The notes under the pieces: generated by a model | The model's input: only the letters and a program-made list of their open reading frames with translations | Told to the model about the DNA's origin: nothing | The model's database searches: none | DNA from: Lytechinus pictus | Taxonomy: Eukaryota | Length of the DNA stretch: 64,000 nt | Direction of reading: 5' to 3' | Assembly (NCBI RefSeq): GCF_037042905.1 | Contig: NC_087251.1 | Span: forward strand, 9,858,001 to 9,922,000 | Program-made: the position numbers and the translations under genes | Shown: in pieces, positions 13,401 to 54,137 of the stretch | How positions within the stretch are numbered: the first letter of the stretch is position 1 | Layout: the number at the start of each line of letters is the position of its first letter

Positions 13401-16400
13401 GACTTGGATCTATTTGTTCTTTTTAGTGATTTTTGTTCTTAAACTGGTCATTATTACTTTTTTTTATAAAATGATCATCATGCAAAGAGTTATCCTCAAG
13501 ATATTCTCATACGTCCATATGCGACTAGTTAAATGGGAATAATTTGTTGAACGGTTATAAGTGGTACTCAATTTAAGACATTGTAATTGAAGTTTGAAAC
13601 CAGACAAGATCAAAGGTTCACTATGATTTCCAAACAGAGCATACGAAAGATAACTGACACAATGTTGTTTTCATAAAAACTTATTCAGGGCCCGTGATAT
13701 ATAAAGCTTATTTCTACGAGGATTTTTTATTGATTATGTGATCAATCCAAGGAAGCTCCTTGATAGCCGTAATTTTATGCAGATTTTTTTTCCTAGAGGT
13801 GGGGGGCAAGACGTGTTAATTTTTTAAGAAACTCTAAAGCGAGGGAGCGAAGCGACCGAGCTTGTCATGGGGCATTTTGCATTTCCTTAAAGGGATGGTC
13901 CAGGCTGAAAATATTTATATCTAAATAAATAGAGTAAATTTCATCAAAATCGGATAACAAACAACGAAGTTATTGAATTGTAAAGTTTATCAATATTTTG
14001 TGAAAACAGTTATATGCACATCGTCGTGAATATTCATTTGGTTGGCTGATGAATGTCATATCCTCACTTTCCTGTTTCTTACGTTACTACATGCAATTAT
14101 AATTGTTTCATTTTTTATAATGTGTAAATGATGTGTCTCCATTATGATAAAATACGTTGCGGCAATAAATAACTAATGCACTTAATCAGTTGTCAATCCA
14201 ATTGTTTTAGTTCTTGGTAGAAATGTTTGAATAAAACTTATTTCATATAATAGAATACAAAAGAACAAGTGGGGATGTGACATCATCGGCCCACCTAATG
14301 AATATTCAGTCCACCCCCCCCCCCCCTTAGAGCACGGCCATAAATCTGCCCATGATTAATCAAACTTTATGTTACAGTGCCAAGGTGGTGATACACACAT
14401 TTCTATATGAAAAAATGTGACCGAAGGTTGACATATAATATTTCATGAGACATCGTAAAGGTAAATTCTAACCTGGTCATTTTGAGTTTTGGTAAGCATT
14501 GAAACAAACACATGAGTGGTGGTCTAGCGATCGAGAACTTAGTCCCATCCATCCTAGTGATCATTGCATCAAGACCTCCGAAATAGTCAACGATCAATGT
14601 GATGAACTCGTATAGACAGACAGCGAAAAAACTAGGGGAATAGAAATGGAAATCATTCAGAAATATCTTAAAATACCATTTCAACTTATTACAGTGTTTA
14701 AATCAGTACGGCTCCGGTGATTATTTTTTCTTAAATAGTACACCTAAGTCTTCTGTGATTTGTAAATTATTTTGAAGTAGATTAATCATAGTTTTATTCT
14801 TTTATAATTGTAACATGATTTTCGTTTTCTTGGTTAGAGAACTGATTATTCTAGAATCAGAGTATCTCCGCCATTCGAATCAAGATATTGACTTGCTCGT
14901 TAGACCTAATCTTTGGTCAAGTAGTGCTAAGAAATCAAATGAATTACCATCAGCATTTCTCCCTTTATCTGAAGATTAAATATTAATATATATATTTTTT
15001 TCAATTCATAGATAAACATGACTTCTGCCCTTGATATAGGATGTGTTTGTCTTACAACTAGTTTCTTATCTTAGTGTTTGTATTATAGTTACTGAACTTC
15101 TGAAGATCAGTGATCAAAGTTGTTATCAATCAAAGGGAAAAGTAGCTAGTTCCCGTTCATATTTCAAATACGAAATATACATAGCAGAGAGGTTTATCTT
15201 TATTAGATTATCGGTTAAAAAAAAGCTCACGCTGTTCCAGTGAGAGTACATAATCCAGCAGCCCTTGGAATGTAGAGACCAAGTAGACATGTTGCACAAA
15301 ATACCTGGAATATGATCAAACATATAACATTTCATAAACTTCTTTGAAGATGTAAGAATAAATGCAAACTTCGATTTTTTTTCTTACGGTTTCTCCACAT
15401 TGCTTACATCATGAAACATAGAAAATGGTAATATAGAAGTATTAGTGTTGGTTAATGTAGTCGTNNNNNNNNNNNNNNNNNNNNNNNNNNNNNNNNNNNN
15501 NNNNNNNNNNNNNNNNNNNNNNNNNNNNNNNNNNNNNNNNNNNNNNNNNNNNNNNNNNNNNNNNNNNNNNNNNNNNNNNNNNNNNNNNNNNNNNNNNNNN
15601 NNNNNNNNNNNNNNNNNNNNNTGTTCAATATACAAGTGCCATATAAATATCACTATGAAAATCGAACAGATAAACTGTACAGTTCTTCGATGTCAAAATG
15701 TCCATGATTTCTATGCCTAAAGCAAATTGACATTAAAAATTTACACTCTGACGGACCGTTCAGACTTCGGTAGGTTTGTACTTTGAATAATGAGATGGAC
15801 AATTAATTAGAATAACGAAGAGGAGAATTGTCCATTACATAAAGCTGTTGATAAGATACCAGTTTATTTCATTTGAGATAATTCTATGTACAGATCGAAA
15901 CTTTATGAATGTCAAATATCATTTATCAAGGTTTTCATTTGTTAGAAGGAGGGGTAGTGGTAAAATGAGTATAAGATATAAAATATTTCACAAATCTGTC
16001 AAAACCGAATGTTCGTTGATTTTGGTAAAGTATTTGTATTTTATTATTTTTCAAATAATTTATTTCCCTTTGTGGGGTGGTCTTATTATACTGCTGTACT
16101 GGCATATACATGGGGGCTTAGGGAGCCATGGCCCCTTCATAGGTTTCGCGACCGTGAAAAAAAAAAGGAGAAGAGGAAAGAGAAGAAAAGGAAAACCGGA
16201 ATATGTATTATTTTCTTAATATTATTTCAAAATCTGTCATAAAATTACATTTGCATTTTGAGAAAGTAAACATATTTGCGCGATCTGAAATTTTTCGGAT
16301 ATTTTGTCGCGTACAGACGCCATGTTCCGCCCCCTCAATTTTCGGGCTCATTACGCCACTGCACCGTTGAATATACATACCGGATATATACCAATGATCC

Positions 16401-38593: not shown

Positions 38594-40867
38594 TATATAT
38601 CAGATTTATTCCATCCAACCTTGATGTATTGTTTTGTTATTATGTCCTGTCAATTATGTCTTGTATAGATATGTAATATCAAATATTATGATAGCTCATT
38701 CATAATTTGATGTAATGTATATATCTTAATACTAGTATATTATCATGCACATGACAATCATGATCTTAATTGGAAATTGAACAAATCTATTTTATTTTTA
38801 TTTATACATGTATGTTTCAGAGGCTGATGTGCAATATAACAGTAGCATCTAAACCTTGAATATTTATTCATCCAGTCAACCTCGCATACCACTTCACAGG
38901 TTTTAGTAAACTATAGTCATAATCATCATCAGTCCATAAGATATTTCATTACATTGTAACTTGAGGCTGCTCAAAGCTGTCTCGTCTGTTGAACCTGTGG
39001 TTGATTCCAAATGTTTTGGGTTTTTTTTTGTCTCTCCTGCAAAGTTAAGAGGCCTCTGTAGCCATTGTGTTGACCTTATCTAATGCAAAGCAAGCTTAAG
39101 TCCCAAAATCAAGCATAATTGGGTGTTGCAAGCAAGCTGAGATGGAATTGAAAATATCTTTCTTCCATGCGTCTGCTTGTTTATATAGCCTGTGCTACCA
39201 CAAGGCACATTTGGTTGGAGAAAATTATTATATGTTGTTTTATGATGTGATGCTCTGCACTATACATATTAATTCATAATTATACAATTAAACTGGACAG
39301 TTATGCTAATAATTAGGAAATATTTGAGAAATTTCTCAAACAGCTTGTGTACTTGAATAATAACTATAGAATACTGACAAGCGCAAGCATTTCCCCAAGG
39401 AAAGCAAATTTCAAAAGAAAAGAAAGTAACAAATTAATTTGGAAATATTTCTTCTCAACACCTACTAAGCGAGCGAAGTTTTAATTCAAGTCAACCAAAA
39501 CTTGTAAAATTGCTTTAATTTGTTAGGTGGGTCCAAAAATAACAAGAGAATAAGAGAAAGGTCTTAGGGTCATGTTCAACTTATGCAGTATTTCCGTTTA
39601 TAAGAGGTTGACTGAATTTAATACAACAGTCCTGAGCTTTCTTGTCAAAATAAATTTGCAACATATGAGCTCAAGATTTCTTTTGTCACATATTTTCTGT
39701 GACCGTGTGTTTGAATGTGTTATGATTGAAAATAGATAAAGGTAAATGGGAAGCTATAAAGGGTATCAGAGAGATAGGGAGTGGAGGGAAGTGTGAGTAA
39801 AAGAGAAAGACAGAAATATGAAAAAAATACTTTATTTGGAGCTTTGAATATTTTTACTATACATCTACTGTATAACAAAGGAGAGAGTATTGTATAGGTA
39901 GGTGGTAGTGAGAAGCACAGAAAGTGATAAAAGGAGCAATAAGCATGAGTATACAAGTGAGTATGCAGAGTAGAAAAGGAGAAGATGGAGGGGTGGGTCA
40001 GTAGATCAAGAATGTGAATAGAAGAAAGAGTGGAAGGATTATGTCATTGCATACAGCTAAACTTTATTCCTCCATTGCCGGATATGATATAATACACATC
40101 TAATTTCTAAAGTATTCAAATACGTATGATGTGTATAGTTAGATTGGACAAACATGAACCCACATAGAAGTTAATTATGTACATCAAAATGTTCTTTGAT
40201 TATCAAGAGACAAAGCCATGTTAAGTAGATGATGACCTTCAAGCTGAAAATATCAAAGCTTTTTGAAAACATTTCAACAGGACAACCGATGACCTAAAAC
40301 ATACATCCGGCAATGATCCATGGTAAATGAAGGCAGACCTTAAAAAAAAGAAACCTCAATGATTTGAAGCAACTCTACGTACTGGTTAAAAAAAAGAGAG
40401 ACAGTAAGTAATCCGGTAAAGAAATTAAAAATGTATTTCATAGCTCTTCACCTGTACATATGCTGCAATCATATTTTTTGTGCATATATATTTAAATACA
40501 ACATCATGCTTAACAGAGAAAATAAATTCTCCACAATCTCAGAGCAACATAGTCATGCATTTGGACATAGTCCACACAGAATAATTATTTCATTATAACA
40601 GCAATACAATTCAAGACAGAGCTTAGAGTGATATATTTCACTTGCTGTTCAATCAAACTTCATATTTGTCTGAATATGAACAATTTCTACACGACAGCTT
40701 AATAGAAGCTGAGAATGATGTTTAAGTTCTTAAAAGAACAGTTTGTAATTTATGTCATTGCAAGAATTTTATTCAACTTGGTCTATTATGACACAAGTTA
40801 TAGCAGAGAATACTATACACAAAGCACATATAGTGTTATTCATGCTTAACTGCTCTTACAAACTCTA

Positions 40868-43989: not shown

Positions 43990-46900
43990 TTACTTCCACT
44001 TGCCTGGCCATTGTTGATCTTTAGCAGTAAGGGGTACATAGACTACACCCATGAGAGTCTTCTTTGTGATTTGTCCTTCTTGTGATTTGTCATACTGCTC
44101 TAGATTCTGAGCTGCTCCTTGTGGTCCTACCGGGATGATGAGACGACCACCAGGCTTCAGTTGCTCAATCAGCTGGTTAAAGAAAAAGATAAATACAACC
44201 TCAATCCATTTACAATAAGATCATTTCTGCATTTAATCCAATTAATTTTCTACTTACATAATAGATCTGCAAACGTGTGGATTGGGGGAAGGTGGTTGAG
44301 ATGCACCAATGAGAGAGGGTCTACCCCCCCCCCCCCGAAAAAAAGTAATAAAAGTAAATAACTGTCCCAAAAGAGTAGGTTCAACTCGTACAAATTTCAT
44401 GATGTTGTGCCATTATCGTTGAATTTTCAAATATCAAAAATGCTTTTTTTTCAATGGATTCTTAGTTGCTTTTTATCATTGAAAAACATCCTACTCTCCA
44501 ATCAGAGTTCAAAATTGGATATGTTATTGGTAATTTGTTCAAATCCAGTATTGCCTATAAACATCAACTCACTGCCTGTGGTAATGTTGGAGCAGCAGCA
44601 CCAACATGAATAGCATCATATGGGGCACCAGAAGCATATCCTTGTCTACCATCACCAACTGGAAATTAAAATAAATCATAAGGATTTAAAAGTTACAATG
44701 AAGACTGGTTATTTTCCTTTTTCCATATAATGGACAGTGTAAACATGTAAAATGATTTTTTTTCTTCAAATATCTATTTCAGCAACGTAACAAGAGTTGA
44801 AACAGATGATAATACACCCATGAAAATTCAATATTATGTCTCTAACTTGAGTTACTGTTATTCACCCTCAAATATACACAGCATATGAGTATTGTAATTT
44901 CTTTGAGAATCAATATAGTACAAGACAAAAATAAACAGCTCTACTTTTATCAAGGGTGAGGACAGAACATGGTAAAACTTCAATCTCATTTATGGGTTCA
45001 CAAATCTGGAATAGCCTTCCTGATGAAGTCAAATGGCTTAAATCTGTAAATTCATATGCAGAACACTTAAAATCATTTTCATACAAGAATATTCATAAGT
45101 TCTTCAATCACTTGTAAATATTGTATATATGTTTTTATTCATTTGTATGCAATCTTGCTTGTACCCTATCGTGCTAGAACTATTCATACACTTTCATTTT
45201 ATTTACACTAGATATATTATTTTATGCAAAGTATAACTTGTAAACTTACATTTTAAACGTTATTTCATGCTATTAATTATGATTATGTATATTATAGGAT
45301 AGGATAGGGCTCCACCTCCCATTAGCAGTACTTGCTATTTCTGTGAAATCCTTTTTCCAATGAAGTATACAACAAATAACCTTGTATAAATGTATTTGAC
45401 ATTGTTTTGGTAATAAATTCAGTTGTTCAGTTCGAAAAGACACATTTCTTACAATATAAAAAGCCATACCATAACTCACCTACTAGCTGCATCCTACCCG
45501 ATGTTAGAAGATCAGGGTTATCCTTTTCTATATTCTTCCTAGATTTATCAACCAATTCTTTGATGTGGTCTATCCCTACTACCTTCCCTGTGGATCCAAC
45601 CTAAAAGATAAAGATAATGTAAAAGTTATAAGGGTTTAATTTCTGCTATATGCATAGAAAGGACATTAAATTTTAAGTTAAATCAAGTGTTTAAATTTTG
45701 GCCAAAATTATCCAAAGTTTATAGACAAGTCATCAAAATAATGTGTGGTGTTTTCTAATAGCATGAATGCCATCCTTATTTTGGTATCTAGTCTTCATGA
45801 ATCAGGTCACAGATAAGATTCCAAGTCTGATTGAGGTGTTTACTAAGAGATGTATTAATTTAATGATCATAAATCATTACTACTAACAATAGGCTTCAAT
45901 TTGATCAAGATTCTCATGATTTCTATCTTTCCATTTTCAGTATGATTGGCTAAGATCAAGATTCTTATCATGACCGCCATCCATGCAATTATTCATGATA
46001 TTAGCTCACATTCTATCAAAATTCTTGGAATGATTTCCATCCATCTAATGTGATTGTTCACACTCTAAATAACAAAAATATCAATATGATGCCTGATATT
46101 CTTTTCAGATTCCTACCAGATTACCATCCATCAAATTATGAATATATATATGTTTTATATTCTTACCATGATTGCCATACAGGAAGTCAAATAACCACTT
46201 CCAGATCCAACATCCAATGCTGACTTGCCTTCACTAAGATGGTCTTTCAGTAGTTCAAGGGCATGTGCATGCTGGAAGATAAAGACACAATATATTTGTT
46301 ATTATTATGACTATTTTACAGTGGCACAGTTTCACTTTTAGACTTTCCAATATTCCATTATATTATGAGCTTTCAAGGTTTGAATGGTGGTAAGACTAGG
46401 GTGATAAGATTTGCAGTGACACCATGTAAGGTAGTTCTGAAAAGAACTGCTTGGTAATCTTTCTAATAATTGTTCTTAAAACAATTGTTAGTTTCAACGT
46501 TTTAAGCATGAAGAGCAGAGTTCTCATGTATTTATTTTTTATGAATCAAAGCAGACCTAGCAGTTTGCATTGCAATCAACATTAGGCTAACAAACAATTA
46601 AAAATCATATCAATTTGCAGACAGTAGGGGAAGGCGGGGTAAGTTGAGACACTTTTTGCATTTTGCATGATAGAATTGATATGACTAATGATATTGTAAA
46701 AATAAGTACCTCACCTTTAAATATGATTCTTGGGAAATCTTTTTCACCTATATACAACTTTCTACCCCCACACAGAAAGTCGTTGTGACCTTTGAAAAAA
46801 AACGATGTCAAGTGGCACAACTTGCCCCATCTGTGGGGTAAGTTGTGCCACCTTCTAGGGTAAGTTGAGCCACAAAAACTACATGTACAAAATGAATGAG

Positions 46901-49900
46901 AGAAGAACCAGCATGTCAATATTTCATTTAAAGTCTTTTCACTTGCTAATTCTCTATAAATACTAACATTCTCTAAAAGTAAAAAGAACTGTCATGTGAA
47001 TTTGCTCTTTTCTGCCTGCATATCGATGGATTTTTAAGGTTTGATTGTTTTTTTATTTACATTACCATAAGAATTACCATGGCTCAACTTGCCCCATGTT
47101 GGCTGGCTCAACTTACCCCAGTCCGAACTTAATGCGATAATTTCACATCCACACATTTCTTATGCATTCATCATGTAAAAGACTATGACAAGAATGAAGG
47201 TCCATACCTGGACTAACAATATTGTTCTTATGTCTTTATTATATGTAAAGACGTGTGTGTGTAAAAAACACTTATCTATTTCACACCCGTTTTTACTTTT
47301 TTGGCTGAAATTTGTATTTTTCCCTCTAAAAAAGTACTTTTTGTTTCAAAGGTGAAAACAATGTGGTGGGGTTAAAGGTTATGTAATGGGTCATCAATAC
47401 ATGACACCACCATAATAGCTGACTCATTCATTTTTGGCCTGGGGCTGGTGGCTCAACTTGCCCCTATGCTCAACTTACCCCGCCTTCCCCTACATACATG
47501 TACTTGTTGGTATTTTGATTTGAATTTAATTGCTAATTGCAAATGAAAGCATCCAACTATCTGGGAGACAGTGTATGAAACACAATATCACAAGTGCAAC
47601 TGCTGATCTGACAACAGGGAATAGCAATTTGAGTGCTTAAAACAATAATCTTTTCATATCCACTATCTCATGCTGTTGTATTTGTTCTCATATTGACTTC
47701 CTTAGAAAATGATGTGCAAATATAAACTTACCATATGAGGTGCACTAATAGTGACAGCATACCCTGCAGTAAAAAACAAAACAATTGAGAAAAGGTTAAT
47801 ACTCTGATAGTATTTAAAAAATATCAAAAGTAAAGCATTGATGACTAAACCAAAATTAGTTGCAATTGTATTCTTCAACATGTGCCATATTTTAATAGTA
47901 AAAAATGCCTAAACTATCTAGCAATCTAGCAAATTCTAGTAATCATAAGTTCTATACATCTTCTATAAATGAATCCCACACCATTTCTGTGTTTTTTAAA
48001 CACATTTTCTGAACTTTTATCATTAAATAAACAAGGCAAAAGCAATTTTGTGTCTCGCCCACTTATGAAAATAACCAGAAACATCGTGATTTGCGAGGGC
48101 ACACAACAGAACTGTATCGAAACTTCATTGTGAAATGACTGGGATGGAATAACACTTGTCATAAGAGCCTTGCACGTAAACTTTAATGTTGACCTGAAAA
48201 TAACCTTTGACCTTACCATGTGACCTCCGACTGCAGCATCACATGCAGGTCCTCCAAGTCCATCTACCATCCAAATTTGGTTGAAAAGTGACTTACGGTT
48301 GCAGAGTTAGGTGACATAAGAGAGTCTTGCATGTAAACTTTAACGTTGACCTGAAAATGACCTTTGACCTTACCATGTAACCTCTGACTGCAGCATACCA
48401 TGCAGGTCCCCAAGTCCATCTACCATCCAAGTTTGGTTGAAAAGTGACGTATGGTTGCAGAGTTAGGTGTCATAATCTGAGTCTTACATGTAAACTTTAA
48501 CGTTGACCTGAAAATGACCTTTGACCTTACCATGTGACCTCCGACTGCAGCCTAACATGCAGGTACCCAAGTCCATCTACCATCCAAGTTTGGTTGAAAA
48601 GTGACTAACGGTTGCGGAGTTAGGTGTCATAAGAAAGTCTTGCATGTAAACTTTAACGTTGACCTGAAAATGACCTTTGACCTTACCATGTGACCTCTGA
48701 CTGCAGCATAACATGCAGGTCCCCCAAGTCCATCTACCATCCAAGTTTGGTTGAAAAGTGACTTATGGTTGCGGAGTTAGGTGTCATAAGAGAGTCTTGC
48801 ATGTAAACTTTAACGTAGACCTGAAAATGACCTTTGACCTTACCATGTGACCTCCGACTGCAGCACAACATGCAGGTCCCCCAAGTCCACTTACCATCTA
48901 AGTTTGGTTGAAAAGTGACTTACGGTTGCGGAGTTAGGTGTCATAAGAGAGTCTTGCATGTAAACTTTAACGTTGACCTGAAAATGACCTTTGACCTTAC
49001 CATGTGACCTTCGACTGCAGCATAACATGCAGGTCCCTCAAGTCCATCTACCATCCAAGTTTGGTTGAAAAGTGACTTACGGTTGCGGAGTTAGGTGTCA
49101 TAAGAGAATCTTGCATGTAAACTTTAACGCTGACCTGAAAATGACCTTTGACCTTGCCATGTGACCTCCGACTGCAGCATAACATGCAGGTCCCCCAAGT
49201 CCATCTACCATCCAAGTTCGGTTGAAACTGAAAAGCGACTTACGGTGGTGGAGTTATGTGTCATTAGGTTTGTGACGGACGGACGACATTTGGATCCCTA
49301 AGTCTCACCTTCACCTCTGGTGGGCGAGACAATAATAAACAAATAAAAAATAAACTCATATTATTAACTTATAACACCAAAACTGCAACTTATAAGATTT
49401 TTAATGCAGCCCAAAAAATTATACTGACATTTTTATCACTTCCTGGAGGTTTTGTTCAAAAACTTTGAAACTATTAAGCACTGATCTTACCAATACTCTG
49501 TGGAGAATCAGCATATGGACTATTACTGCTGTAGTGTTTGCGATCAACAGCTCGCATTGCCTTCAAAACTGCATCATTCTTGATGATTCCATTTTCTACA
49601 ATTAATGAAACACAAAATAGTGTATTCCATCAAAAGTGATTTGTGAACATAAATACATACATGTAATTGGTAAATTGAAAAAGATAATGGTTGGAATTCA
49701 ATCAAAATGGAATTATGTAATGTTTTGTAGTTTTACGTGTTACCTTCACAAAATCAAAATAGGCATATGTGACGTAAGGCCTGGCATAGTGTAAATTAGA
49801 CAGCTGAAATTTGTCTATTTAGAAGATTGTAGCTCTACATTATTTTATTCTTGTTTTGTTATGAAATTGCATTCCTAGTACCATTGAGGTCAAAATATAT

Positions 49901-52900: not shown

Positions 52901-53323
52901 CATATAAAAAATAACTAACAACATTTTACACTAGTGGGGCTGTATAAAAAATTCTAGTTTATGATACAAGCATACAGAAAGCTTCTTATGATTGAGCTCA
53001 TTCGACTTTATCATCGACCGTTTAACATTGTCATGGCATGAATTGAAATTATTAAATGACCATTCATGTATACCTTTAAGTCTTGTTATGAGCTCTTCAT
53101 GCGATTCTCCACTGGATCTCCAAGCCATCTCTGCTCGATGAATGTACCGCGCCCCAGCGGCCCCCATAGATTTACACGATCCGTCGGGTTGAAACTCTCC
53201 GTCACAGACTTCTTCTTCGGCCTCAGCTCTCACACTGGTGACACAATTTAAAATTGTAATTGAGAACTGAACTAATATTATTGCAAAATAAGAAATTTGA
53301 ACATATTTTATTTTACTTGACAT
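43990..53323 (-). CDS. PCMT1: Protein-L-isoaspartate(D-aspartate) O-methyltransferase (PIMT); 228 aa from ATG 53128 or 293 aa from upstream ATG 53323
   Basis: Exons 53323(53128)-53074, 49595-49491, 47763-47732, 46271-46167, 45600-45480, 44658-44573, 44172-43990, all in phase. Motifs: [42 protein letters not shown] (SAM motif I), [40 protein letters not shown]-terminus QWPGKWK. Confidence 0.97.
44870..45100 (+). mobile_element. L2/CR1-group LINE 3' fragment
   Basis: Translates [33 protein letters not shown], typical of the ORF2 C-terminal WNxLP motif. Confidence 0.65.
46627..47490. mobile_element. MITE with TA TSD (Tc1/mariner/pogo-like)
   Basis: TA|GGGGAAGGCGGGGTAAGTTGAG ... CTCAACTTACCCCGCCTTCCCC|TA. 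GGGTAAGTTGAGCC / GGCTCAACTTRCCCC are repeated internally. Confidence 0.88.
48030..49338 (-). mobile_element. Non-autonomous Helentron/DINE-like element with 7 x 157-bp satellite
   Basis: Inverted repeat TGTCTCGCCCAC (48051-48062) / GTGGGCGAGACA (49320-49331), GACG microsatellite near 49274. Unit anchors at 48195, 48352, 48509, 48665, 48822, 48979, 49136. Confidence 0.8.
50480..50795 (+). mobile_element. CR1/L2-group LINE ORF2 3' fragment
   Basis: [22 protein letters not shown]...TRSSH then, after a frameshift, [17 protein letters not shown]...SFRQSL. Confidence 0.75.
51330..52790. mobile_element. Unclassified CpG-richer insertion in PCMT1 intron 1
   Basis: Abrupt rise in CpG content relative to the flanking intron and a perfect hairpin at 51385-51417. 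Termini not identified, so boundaries are approximate. Confidence 0.35.
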
Positions 53324-53434
53324 ACTAATCGAGAATATAAGATCGGGTGCAATCACAACAAACTAATATAAACTTTCATATTTTGTATATCAAACAGTCT
53401 TTCGCGCAGTCTGTAGTCAATTATCTCGCCTCAG

Positions 53435-53573
53435 GGCCCCGCCCCCATACACAAGCCTCCATCCAAGGCAAGAAAAAGCTCGATTATTTAGTCTTTAATT
53501 TTATATATCACAAGAACTAGATTTTCAGTTCTCCTTTTTTTTCTGTCTGACTTTCTCAAATTCGGTTACGTCA
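53435..53573 (-). promoter_or_regulatory. PCMT1 proximal promoter motifs (GC box, CRE-like)
   Basis: GGCCCCGCCCC at 53435-53445 and TTACGTCA at 53566-53573, upstream of both ATGs. Confidence 0.45.
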
Positions 53574-53984
53574 GCTTTGGCGTAAAGACTCATTTAAAAA
53601 GCAAAATATGTTGAGATCATATTTTAGCCACATTAAACGCACTCATCATGATGCTCATAAAATGAGTTGATCGACGAGAGGGTACCGTAATAATCGGGGG
53701 ATCGGGGATATACTTTATCTTTTGTGTTTTTAGGCATTCATAAGAGCCATAAAACCGTAATAATTAACCTTATAGCAAAACATAGGTATAACCAATGGCC
53801 ACTAAATTAGTTAATATCAATATCACCATACATTTTCATATTCTCTTACATGAAATGCAAGATCCATTGGCATATGGTGTCCGATCCGCGGCGGCGGGGC
53901 AGGGGATTCCATGGGAGTGGGGATATACCCCCCTTCATGTGGGGGGGGGGGGATGGCCTGTATGATTATCATCCCCCAACAAAT

Positions 53985-54137
53985 NNNNNNNNNNNNNNNN
54001 NNNNNNNNNNNNNNNNNNNNNNNNNNNNNNNNNNNNNNNNNNNNNNNNNNNNNNNNNNNNNNNNNNNNNNNNNNNNNNNNNNNNNNNNNNNNNNNNNNNN
54101 NNNNNNNNNNNNNNNNNNNNNNNNNNNNNNNNNNNNN
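53985..54137. other. Assembly gap (N run)
   Basis: Run of n. Confidence 1.

Follow-up and report, generated by a model that had tools for sequence, protein, structure and literature searches.

A conserved N-terminal extension with signal-like anatomy on a sea urchin PIMT: a candidate ER-targeting signal nested in exon 1

PIMT/PCMT1 is regarded as a repair enzyme of the cytosol, a view into which an -RDEL terminus without a signal peptide and the presence of PCMT1 outside cells fit poorly. As summarized in PMC7859441, which cites the original reports (MacLaren et al. 1992; Potter et al. 1992), vertebrate PCMT1 isozyme II carries a C-terminal -RDEL, and the idea of an ER pool was raised. The zebrafish study itself found no signal with TargetP in the canonical PCMT forms and mentioned N-terminally extended isoforms that "may be generated", which were left untested there (PMC7859441). 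Extracellular PCMT1 has been reported (PMC8760697; PMC12150319), and a 2025 study described PCMT1 as having no secretion signal and as being secreted unconventionally (PMC12187236). Here, we examined a sea urchin PIMT gene on the minus strand of a 64,000-nucleotide stretch of Lytechinus pictus DNA (NC_087251.1, positions 9,858,001 to 9,922,000; hereafter the window, whose own numbering is used throughout) and asked whether the open frame preceding its canonical start is coding sequence, and whether it is built to direct some of the PIMT to the secretory pathway.

Gene model and the starts of exon 1

The PCMT/PIMT gene was rebuilt on the minus strand as seven exons with AG/GT at every border (Table 1). 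The resulting coding sequence of 882 nt is stop-free, and the model yields products of 293 aa from the upstream start M1, 241 aa from M53, and 228 aa from M66, reproducing both the 228-aa and the 293-aa lengths given in the first-pass annotation of this DNA. Matches to the Pfam profile PF01135 (PCMT) were found at 44017-44175, 44567-44668, and 46086-46280 with scores of 52.7, 39.6, and 42.1 bits, respectively, so that single exons already exceed the curated cut-off of 20.3 bits. The glycine-rich SAM-binding motif, the block GGRLIIPVG, and the other conserved PCMT blocks are all present in the 293-aa product. Judged by profile, motifs, and intact frame, the sequence identifies the gene as protein-L-isoaspartate O-methyltransferase (PIMT/PCMT). 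The 293-aa protein has no N-x-S/T sequon and contains four cysteines (C27, C40, C50, and C160).

The PCMT gene is single copy; the animal's own genome was searched for a retrocopy that would reveal the 5' end. Weak PF01135 matches lie elsewhere in the genome, at G000:C17:9894740-9894940 (L004, 30 bits) and G000:C21:277149-277409 (L005, 27.6 bits), the latter within a 217-aa open frame, and both may be PCMTD-type or other PCMT-domain paralogues. Intron 2 of the PCMT gene houses a tandem array (48157-49227; 6.8 copies of a 157-nt unit, 93% matches) that reads on the minus strand as repeated open fragments and probably represents satellite DNA or a mobile-element-derived repeat.

Re-reading of exon 1 confirmed that 65 codons without a stop run from the ATG at 53323-53321 (minus strand, A at -3) in frame into the canonical MAWRSSG start at 53128, as the first-pass annotation had claimed. 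The frame before the canonical Met is open for 78 codons in all, with in-frame stops upstream of 53323. A third in-frame start, M53 (53167, MGAAGAR), was absent from that earlier account. Among the three Kozak contexts, that of M66 is the best, that of M1 is adequate (no G at +4), and that of M53 (tctATGg, identical in three of three taxa compared below) is weak owing to T at -3. Few AUGs in other frames occur between M1 and M66, these are species-specific, and those before M53 (one in the window and one in a relative, L006) close before M53, so that downstream initiation would be possible by leaky scanning or reinitiation. The exon ends with the donor AAAG/GTATAC, its last base being 53074.

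Table 1. Features of the PCMT/PIMT locus in window coordinates
Feature	Coordinates	Strand	Basis or remark
GC box GGGGGCGGGGCC	53435..53446	minus	~112 nt upstream of M1; not conserved in relatives
uORF MKVYISLL-stop, out of frame	53353..53379	minus	sequence reading; 54 nt upstream of M1
Exon 1 (coding from M1)	53323-53074	minus	AG/GT model; splice to exon 2 seen in RNA reads
M1, upstream in-frame start of 293-aa form	53321..53323	minus	context ttAgtATGt, A at -3; kept in L006 and L007
n-region S2-K6 (SSKIK), net positive	53306..53320	minus	flank charge +2, free amino terminus excluded
Hydrophobic core Y7-V31, 25 uncharged residues	53231..53305	minus	best 19-residue KD mean 2.0
Candidate signal-peptidase site V31-R32-A33	53225..53233	minus	by inspection; cut before E34 (between 53225 and 53224)
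Acidic linker E34-S52 with Cys pair	53168..53224	minus	invariant residues in three taxa; C-flank charge -5
M53 start and 12 codons (M53-E65)	53129..53167	minus	best conserved piece of extension; fits N-myristoylation pattern
Canonical start M66 and remainder of exon 1	53074..53128	minus	context GagATGG; donor AAAG/GT
Exon 2	49491..49595	minus	AG/GT model; joined to exon 1 in RNA reads
Exon 3	47732..47763	minus	AG/GT model
Exon 4, SAM-binding motif	46167..46271	minus	AG/GT model, motif match
Exon 5	45480..45600	minus	AG/GT model
Exon 6	44573..44658	minus	AG/GT model and Pfam match
Exon 7, tail ...QQWPGKWK and stop codon	43990..44172	minus	AG/GT model and Pfam match

The GC box that had been placed upstream of the ATG at 53323 was located at 53446-53435. 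Alignment of the upstream sequence with that of the relatives revealed only a weak shared AACTGCGCAATAT-like element and no conserved GC box; a sigma-70 promoter scan was set aside as irrelevant to an animal promoter. The short uORF at 53353-53379 matters for the use of M1 only if transcripts start upstream of it, and the leaders of both relatives (L006 and L007) also contain an upstream ATG each, at positions that do not align with the uORF of the window. Runs of N occur at 53985-54137 (153 bases) and at 15465-15621 (157 bases). Since the former lies ~660 nt upstream of M1, the far promoter and any divergent neighbour are unreadable.

Four raw-read RNA runs were compared with 52950-53750. The three rRNA-depleted runs (X21-X23, from one organism) gave 0 reads and hence constitute no test, and the cDNA run (X24, from a second organism) gave 13 reads at 95-99% identity, spanning 53058-53273. 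Of these, 11 are spliced at 53074 with loose ends that correspond to the start of exon 2, which confirms the exon 1 donor and the exon 1-2 junction. A further observation concerns two reads, likely a mate pair from a single fragment, that span ~53121-53270. The mRNA therefore extends 145 nt or more beyond the canonical AUG in the 5' direction, through M53 and the Cys-pair linker and into the h-region coding sequence. Read depth is ~10 at 53085-53111, falls to 2, and is then 0 above 53273 (M1 being at 53323), which is compatible with a main transcription start downstream of M1 in that sample, 13 reads being too few to place it. Four of nine X24 reads carry a plus-strand A>G at 53123, a synonymous change (GCT to GCC, Ala) in the second canonical codon that is presumably a polymorphism.

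Conservation of the extension in two relatives

Relatives were sought with the 83-aa exon-1 product by scanning 1.84 billion representative proteins and by word-indexed searches (proteins up to 250 aa). Two were recovered, namely P0001, encoded on contig L006 from Logan, and P0005, encoded on scaffold L007 from a Tara metagenome, and both sequences are genomic because their open reading frames continue into the intron after RLKG. Three further candidates from the representative search (P0002-P0004) were rejected as low-complexity chance matches. The word-indexed search found no 79-250-aa proteins sharing exon-1 words (18 residues), perhaps because databases contain longer models of sea urchin PCMT or none at all. 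A scan of JGI metagenomes with the extension alignment returned 199 pattern matches, of which 0 were confirmed, and a feature search of the ESM Atlas returned no usable match. The comparison accordingly comprises three taxa, namely the window, L006, and L007.

In both relatives, an ATG that also has A at -3 aligns with M1 (191-193 in L006; 221-226 in L007, as ATGATG), and in both the frame is open from this ATG to the canonical Met. The indels between the window and L006 measure 3, 3, and 9 nt, all frame-preserving. ATG, frame, and hydrophobic core are kept in L006 and L007, with neither stops nor frameshifts in their extensions. Nucleotide identity between the window and L006 is 48% upstream of M1, 72% over M1-S52, 92% over M53-E65, 85% over the canonical part of exon 1, and 62% in intron 1.

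Nei-Gojobori estimates gave a dS of 0.7-2.3 for the canonical part of exon 1, which indicates that the three sequences come from well-diverged species. Over M53-E65, dN is 0-0.05 against a dS of 0.17-0.38, and over M1-S52, dN/dS is 0.24, 0.56, and 0.16 at a dS of ~1 or more. All 11 differences between the window and L006 from M53 to K83 fall at third codon positions. Before M53, eight residues (C40, G42, E43, D47, G48, C50, K51, and S52) are invariant in the three taxa, and synonymous third-position changes occur in the codons of invariant linker residues, including G and E codons. This coding-type conservation argues that the stretch upstream of M53 is translated, and M1 is the only conserved AUG able to serve. 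On this comparative evidence, the 65-codon extension is very probably real coding sequence.

The extension is unusual even as a single sequence, because both its open frame and its core are rare in simulation. In a first-order Markov simulation of the local (dinucleotide) composition, at least 65 open codons upstream of a fixed point arose with a probability of ~0.014 (1.4%), and at least 65 open codons together with an in-frame ATG that far upstream with a probability of ~0.004 (0.4%). Given the open frame, a best 19-residue Kyte-Doolittle mean of at least 2.0 has a probability of ~0.04, for a joint single-sequence chance of open frame, ATG, and hydrophobic core of ~2e-4.

Signal-like anatomy and alternative readings

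The first-pass annotation had described a basic n-region, a hydrophobic core, a V-x-A site, and an acidic linker with a Cys pair. This layout stands and is kept in both relatives, the cleavage site being a candidate. Excluding the free amino terminus, the N-flank carries a charge of +2 in the window, +3 in L006, and +1 in L007, and the uncharged core that follows measures 25 residues in the window (KD 2.0), 26 in L006 (KD 2.69), and 14 in L007 (KD 2.42, over a 19-residue window). The core diverges in sequence among the three taxa with its hydrophobic character kept, and an h-region conserved in character rather than in sequence is typical of signal peptides. By inspection, the -3/-1 residues after the core are V/A (V-R-A), I/A (I-R-A), and I/G (I-R-G), each followed by E or S-E. 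The positive n-region, the h-region, and, by inspection, the small neutral -3/-1 residues of a Sec signal peptide are all found. The C-flank of the core has a net charge of -5 over 15 residues and contains the Cys pair. The positive-inside and charge-difference rules are established guides to membrane orientation. Applied to the charges on either side of the core, they predict a cytosolic N-terminus and an exoplasmic C-terminus, so that the catalytic domain would be translocated whether or not the signal is cleaved. Against an ER signal, Q, S, T, and N residues occur within the window and L006 cores, and the window core is only moderately hydrophobic, with an unweighted Hessa sum of +1.9 as compared with -2.6 for L006.

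We propose that exon 1 holds nested in-frame starts, where the conserved upstream AUG, M1 (53323), would add 65 residues whose first ~33 act as an ER-targeting signal, either cleavable (cut after V-R-A) or retained as an uncleaved type II signal anchor. The acidic linker, the Cys pair (likely a disulfide), M53-E65, and the whole methyltransferase domain would then be translocated into the ER lumen, and the M1 form would be destined for the secretory pathway or the cell exterior. The downstream AUGs, M66 with its strong Kozak context and possibly M53, would give the ordinary cytosolic enzyme, through leaky scanning, through reinitiation, or from transcripts that begin further downstream; an additional transcription start between M1 and M53, of the kind seen in COMT, is just as possible. 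That the extension is an ER-targeting signal sending part of the PIMT into the secretory pathway is probable, at about 0.6 in our estimate. That M1 is used, that its product is translocated and cleaved, where it finally resides, and that it is active there are all steps that we infer. The pairing of a cytosolic form with an ER-targeted or anchored one, already suggested in the first pass, gains from the coding-type selection, the conserved signal anatomy, and the charged flanks, and retention in the ER finds no support in the main -GKWK tail. We know of no source of SAM in the ER lumen, which counts against a lumenal PIMT.

An untranslated 5' leader that is open by chance, with the signal being pareidolia on AT-rich sequence, has some points in its favour: frames in AT-rich DNA are often rich in I, L, F, and K, equal hydrophobicity is reached by 6 of the 76 natural stop-free fragments of at least 65 aa on the minus strand of the window, and none of the 13 reads from one run covers M1. 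Such a leader would not, however, be expected to keep its frame, ATG, and core in three taxa at saturating synonymous divergence, with dN/dS below 1, indels in threes, and an identity that rises at the ATG, and the joint chance calculated above speaks against it even for one sequence; we strongly disfavour this explanation. Alternatively, the functional extension could be limited to the 13-residue block that starts at M53; the product would be a 241-aa cytosolic enzyme, maybe N-myristoylated on Gly54 and located at the membrane periphery, and the stretch upstream of M53 would be 5'UTR or promoter conserved for a non-coding cause. The exceptional conservation of M53-E65 favours this alternative, as does the invariant MGAAGAR, which in the M53 form only fits PROSITE PS00008, whose pattern is G-{EDRKHPFYW}-x(2)-[STAGCN]-{P}. 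The drop in read depth between 53165 and 53273, to 0 above, likewise fits a transcription start between M1 and M53. The conservation at the protein level nevertheless continues before M53, through the eight invariant residues and their synonymous third-position changes; frame-preserving indels and a kept ATG and core are unexpected of a UTR at a dS of ~1, and the initiation context of M53 is weak. Since the M53 form is unable to explain the coding-type conservation before M53, it would be an addition to the M1 signal rather than a replacement of it. As the whole explanation it appears improbable, while a 241-aa, possibly myristoylated M53 form may exist alongside.

A different outcome for the M1 form is that the hydrophobic stretch serves as an uncleaved type II signal anchor, which would make the PIMT a membrane-bound ecto- or lumenal enzyme rather than a soluble one. 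With 25-26 uncharged residues, the cores of the window and L006 are longer than is usual in a cleaved signal and could reach across a bilayer, and they may be type II anchors; the Hessa sum of L006 and the orientation predicted from the flanks agree with this. The core of L007, in contrast, is too short to cross a membrane and so speaks for cleavage, the small -3/-1 residues are conserved in three of three taxa, and the window core is broken by Q19, S21, T23, and N26. We consider the anchor unlikely.

Whether the M1 form would stay in the ER depends on its C-terminus. The main C-terminus is -GKWK, and no KDEL-type retrieval signal was found there; the PROSITE pattern for ER retrieval is a C-terminal [KRHQSA]-[DENQ]-E-L. 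Inside the PCMT tail (43990-44010, minus strand) lies a consensus GC donor, CAG/GCAAGT, at which the exon would end at 44004, and its joining to an AG acceptor (40439-40452; first exon base 40452) would give ...QQWPGEEL. This hypothetical -GEEL tail has G at -4, which is non-canonical for retrieval, and the pyrimidine tract of the acceptor is weak (10/20). The position of the alternative splice is alike in the vertebrate -RWK/-RDEL switch and the putative sea urchin -GKWK/-GEEL switch. ER residence of the long form is not supported, and secretion or another destination beyond the ER is no less likely, which leaves the ER-resident, lumenal-repair reading speculative. A still more elaborate arrangement, in which M1 would give a lumenal or secreted, disulfide-stabilized form, M53 a myristoylated, membrane-peripheral form, and M66 the cytosolic enzyme, with -GEEL making the M1 form ER-resident, is doubtful in our view.

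Known isoforms and implications for PIMT biology

Nested starts that partition a small methyltransferase have a precedent in COMT. The long form, MB-COMT, is made from an upstream AUG and bears an N-terminal hydrophobic anchor of ~50 residues, and S-COMT starts at a downstream in-frame AUG through an internal promoter and leaky scanning; the catalytic domain of COMT is generally placed on the cytosolic side. The likeness to the sea urchin PIMT is that of a small SAM-dependent methyltransferase with long and soluble forms from nested AUGs. However, COMT acts on an unrelated substrate class, and the charge distribution around its anchor is different, whereas the flanks in the sea urchin PIMT predict a translocated catalytic domain. 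Closer to the family, vertebrate databases hold human and mouse PCMT1 models of ~285 aa with an upstream in-frame AUG and a hydrophobic stretch that directly precedes the canonical Met, so that neither an acidic Cys-pair linker nor a counterpart of the M53-E65 block lies between them. The literature searched yielded no paper describing a Sec-type signal or an N-terminally extended animal PCMT, including the ~285-aa vertebrate models.

Within the family, vertebrate isozyme II offers an ER or secretory hint through an alternative isoform of one gene. Its hint, however, is a C-terminal retrieval motif with no known signal peptide, whereas the sea urchin element is N-terminal and the tail reads -GKWK. 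In Arabidopsis PIMT2, alternative transcription starts and splicing of the first intron add N-terminal targeting peptides, as described in PMC3847293 with reference to Dinkins et al. (2008). PIMT is there localized differently by including or excluding a 5'-encoded N-terminal extension. Its extensions, in contrast, lead to chloroplasts and other organelles rather than to the Sec route, and the mechanism involves alternative splicing, whereas the sea urchin starts all lie in one exon. Neither the -RDEL isoform nor the notion of an ER pool is recent; what is new here, as far as the searched literature goes, is a conserved signal-like N-terminal extension on an animal PIMT. Should the 293-aa form already appear among automatic gene models of sea urchins, the value of this work would lie in the evolutionary evidence and the reading of the extension rather than in the model.

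If the main reading is true, the sea urchin would naturally produce a PIMT equipped for classical secretion. If the three-start arrangement with the -GEEL tail were also true, it would imply isoAsp repair of secretory or matrix proteins and a lumenal or extracellular supply of SAM, and the long-standing puzzle of -RDEL in animal PCMT1 would find an answer in classical secretion. Sea urchin embryos are suited to mRNA injection and imaging, which makes isoAsp repair in the lumen or matrix, the presence of SAM there, and the partitioning of one enzyme by a single exon directly testable in this organism.
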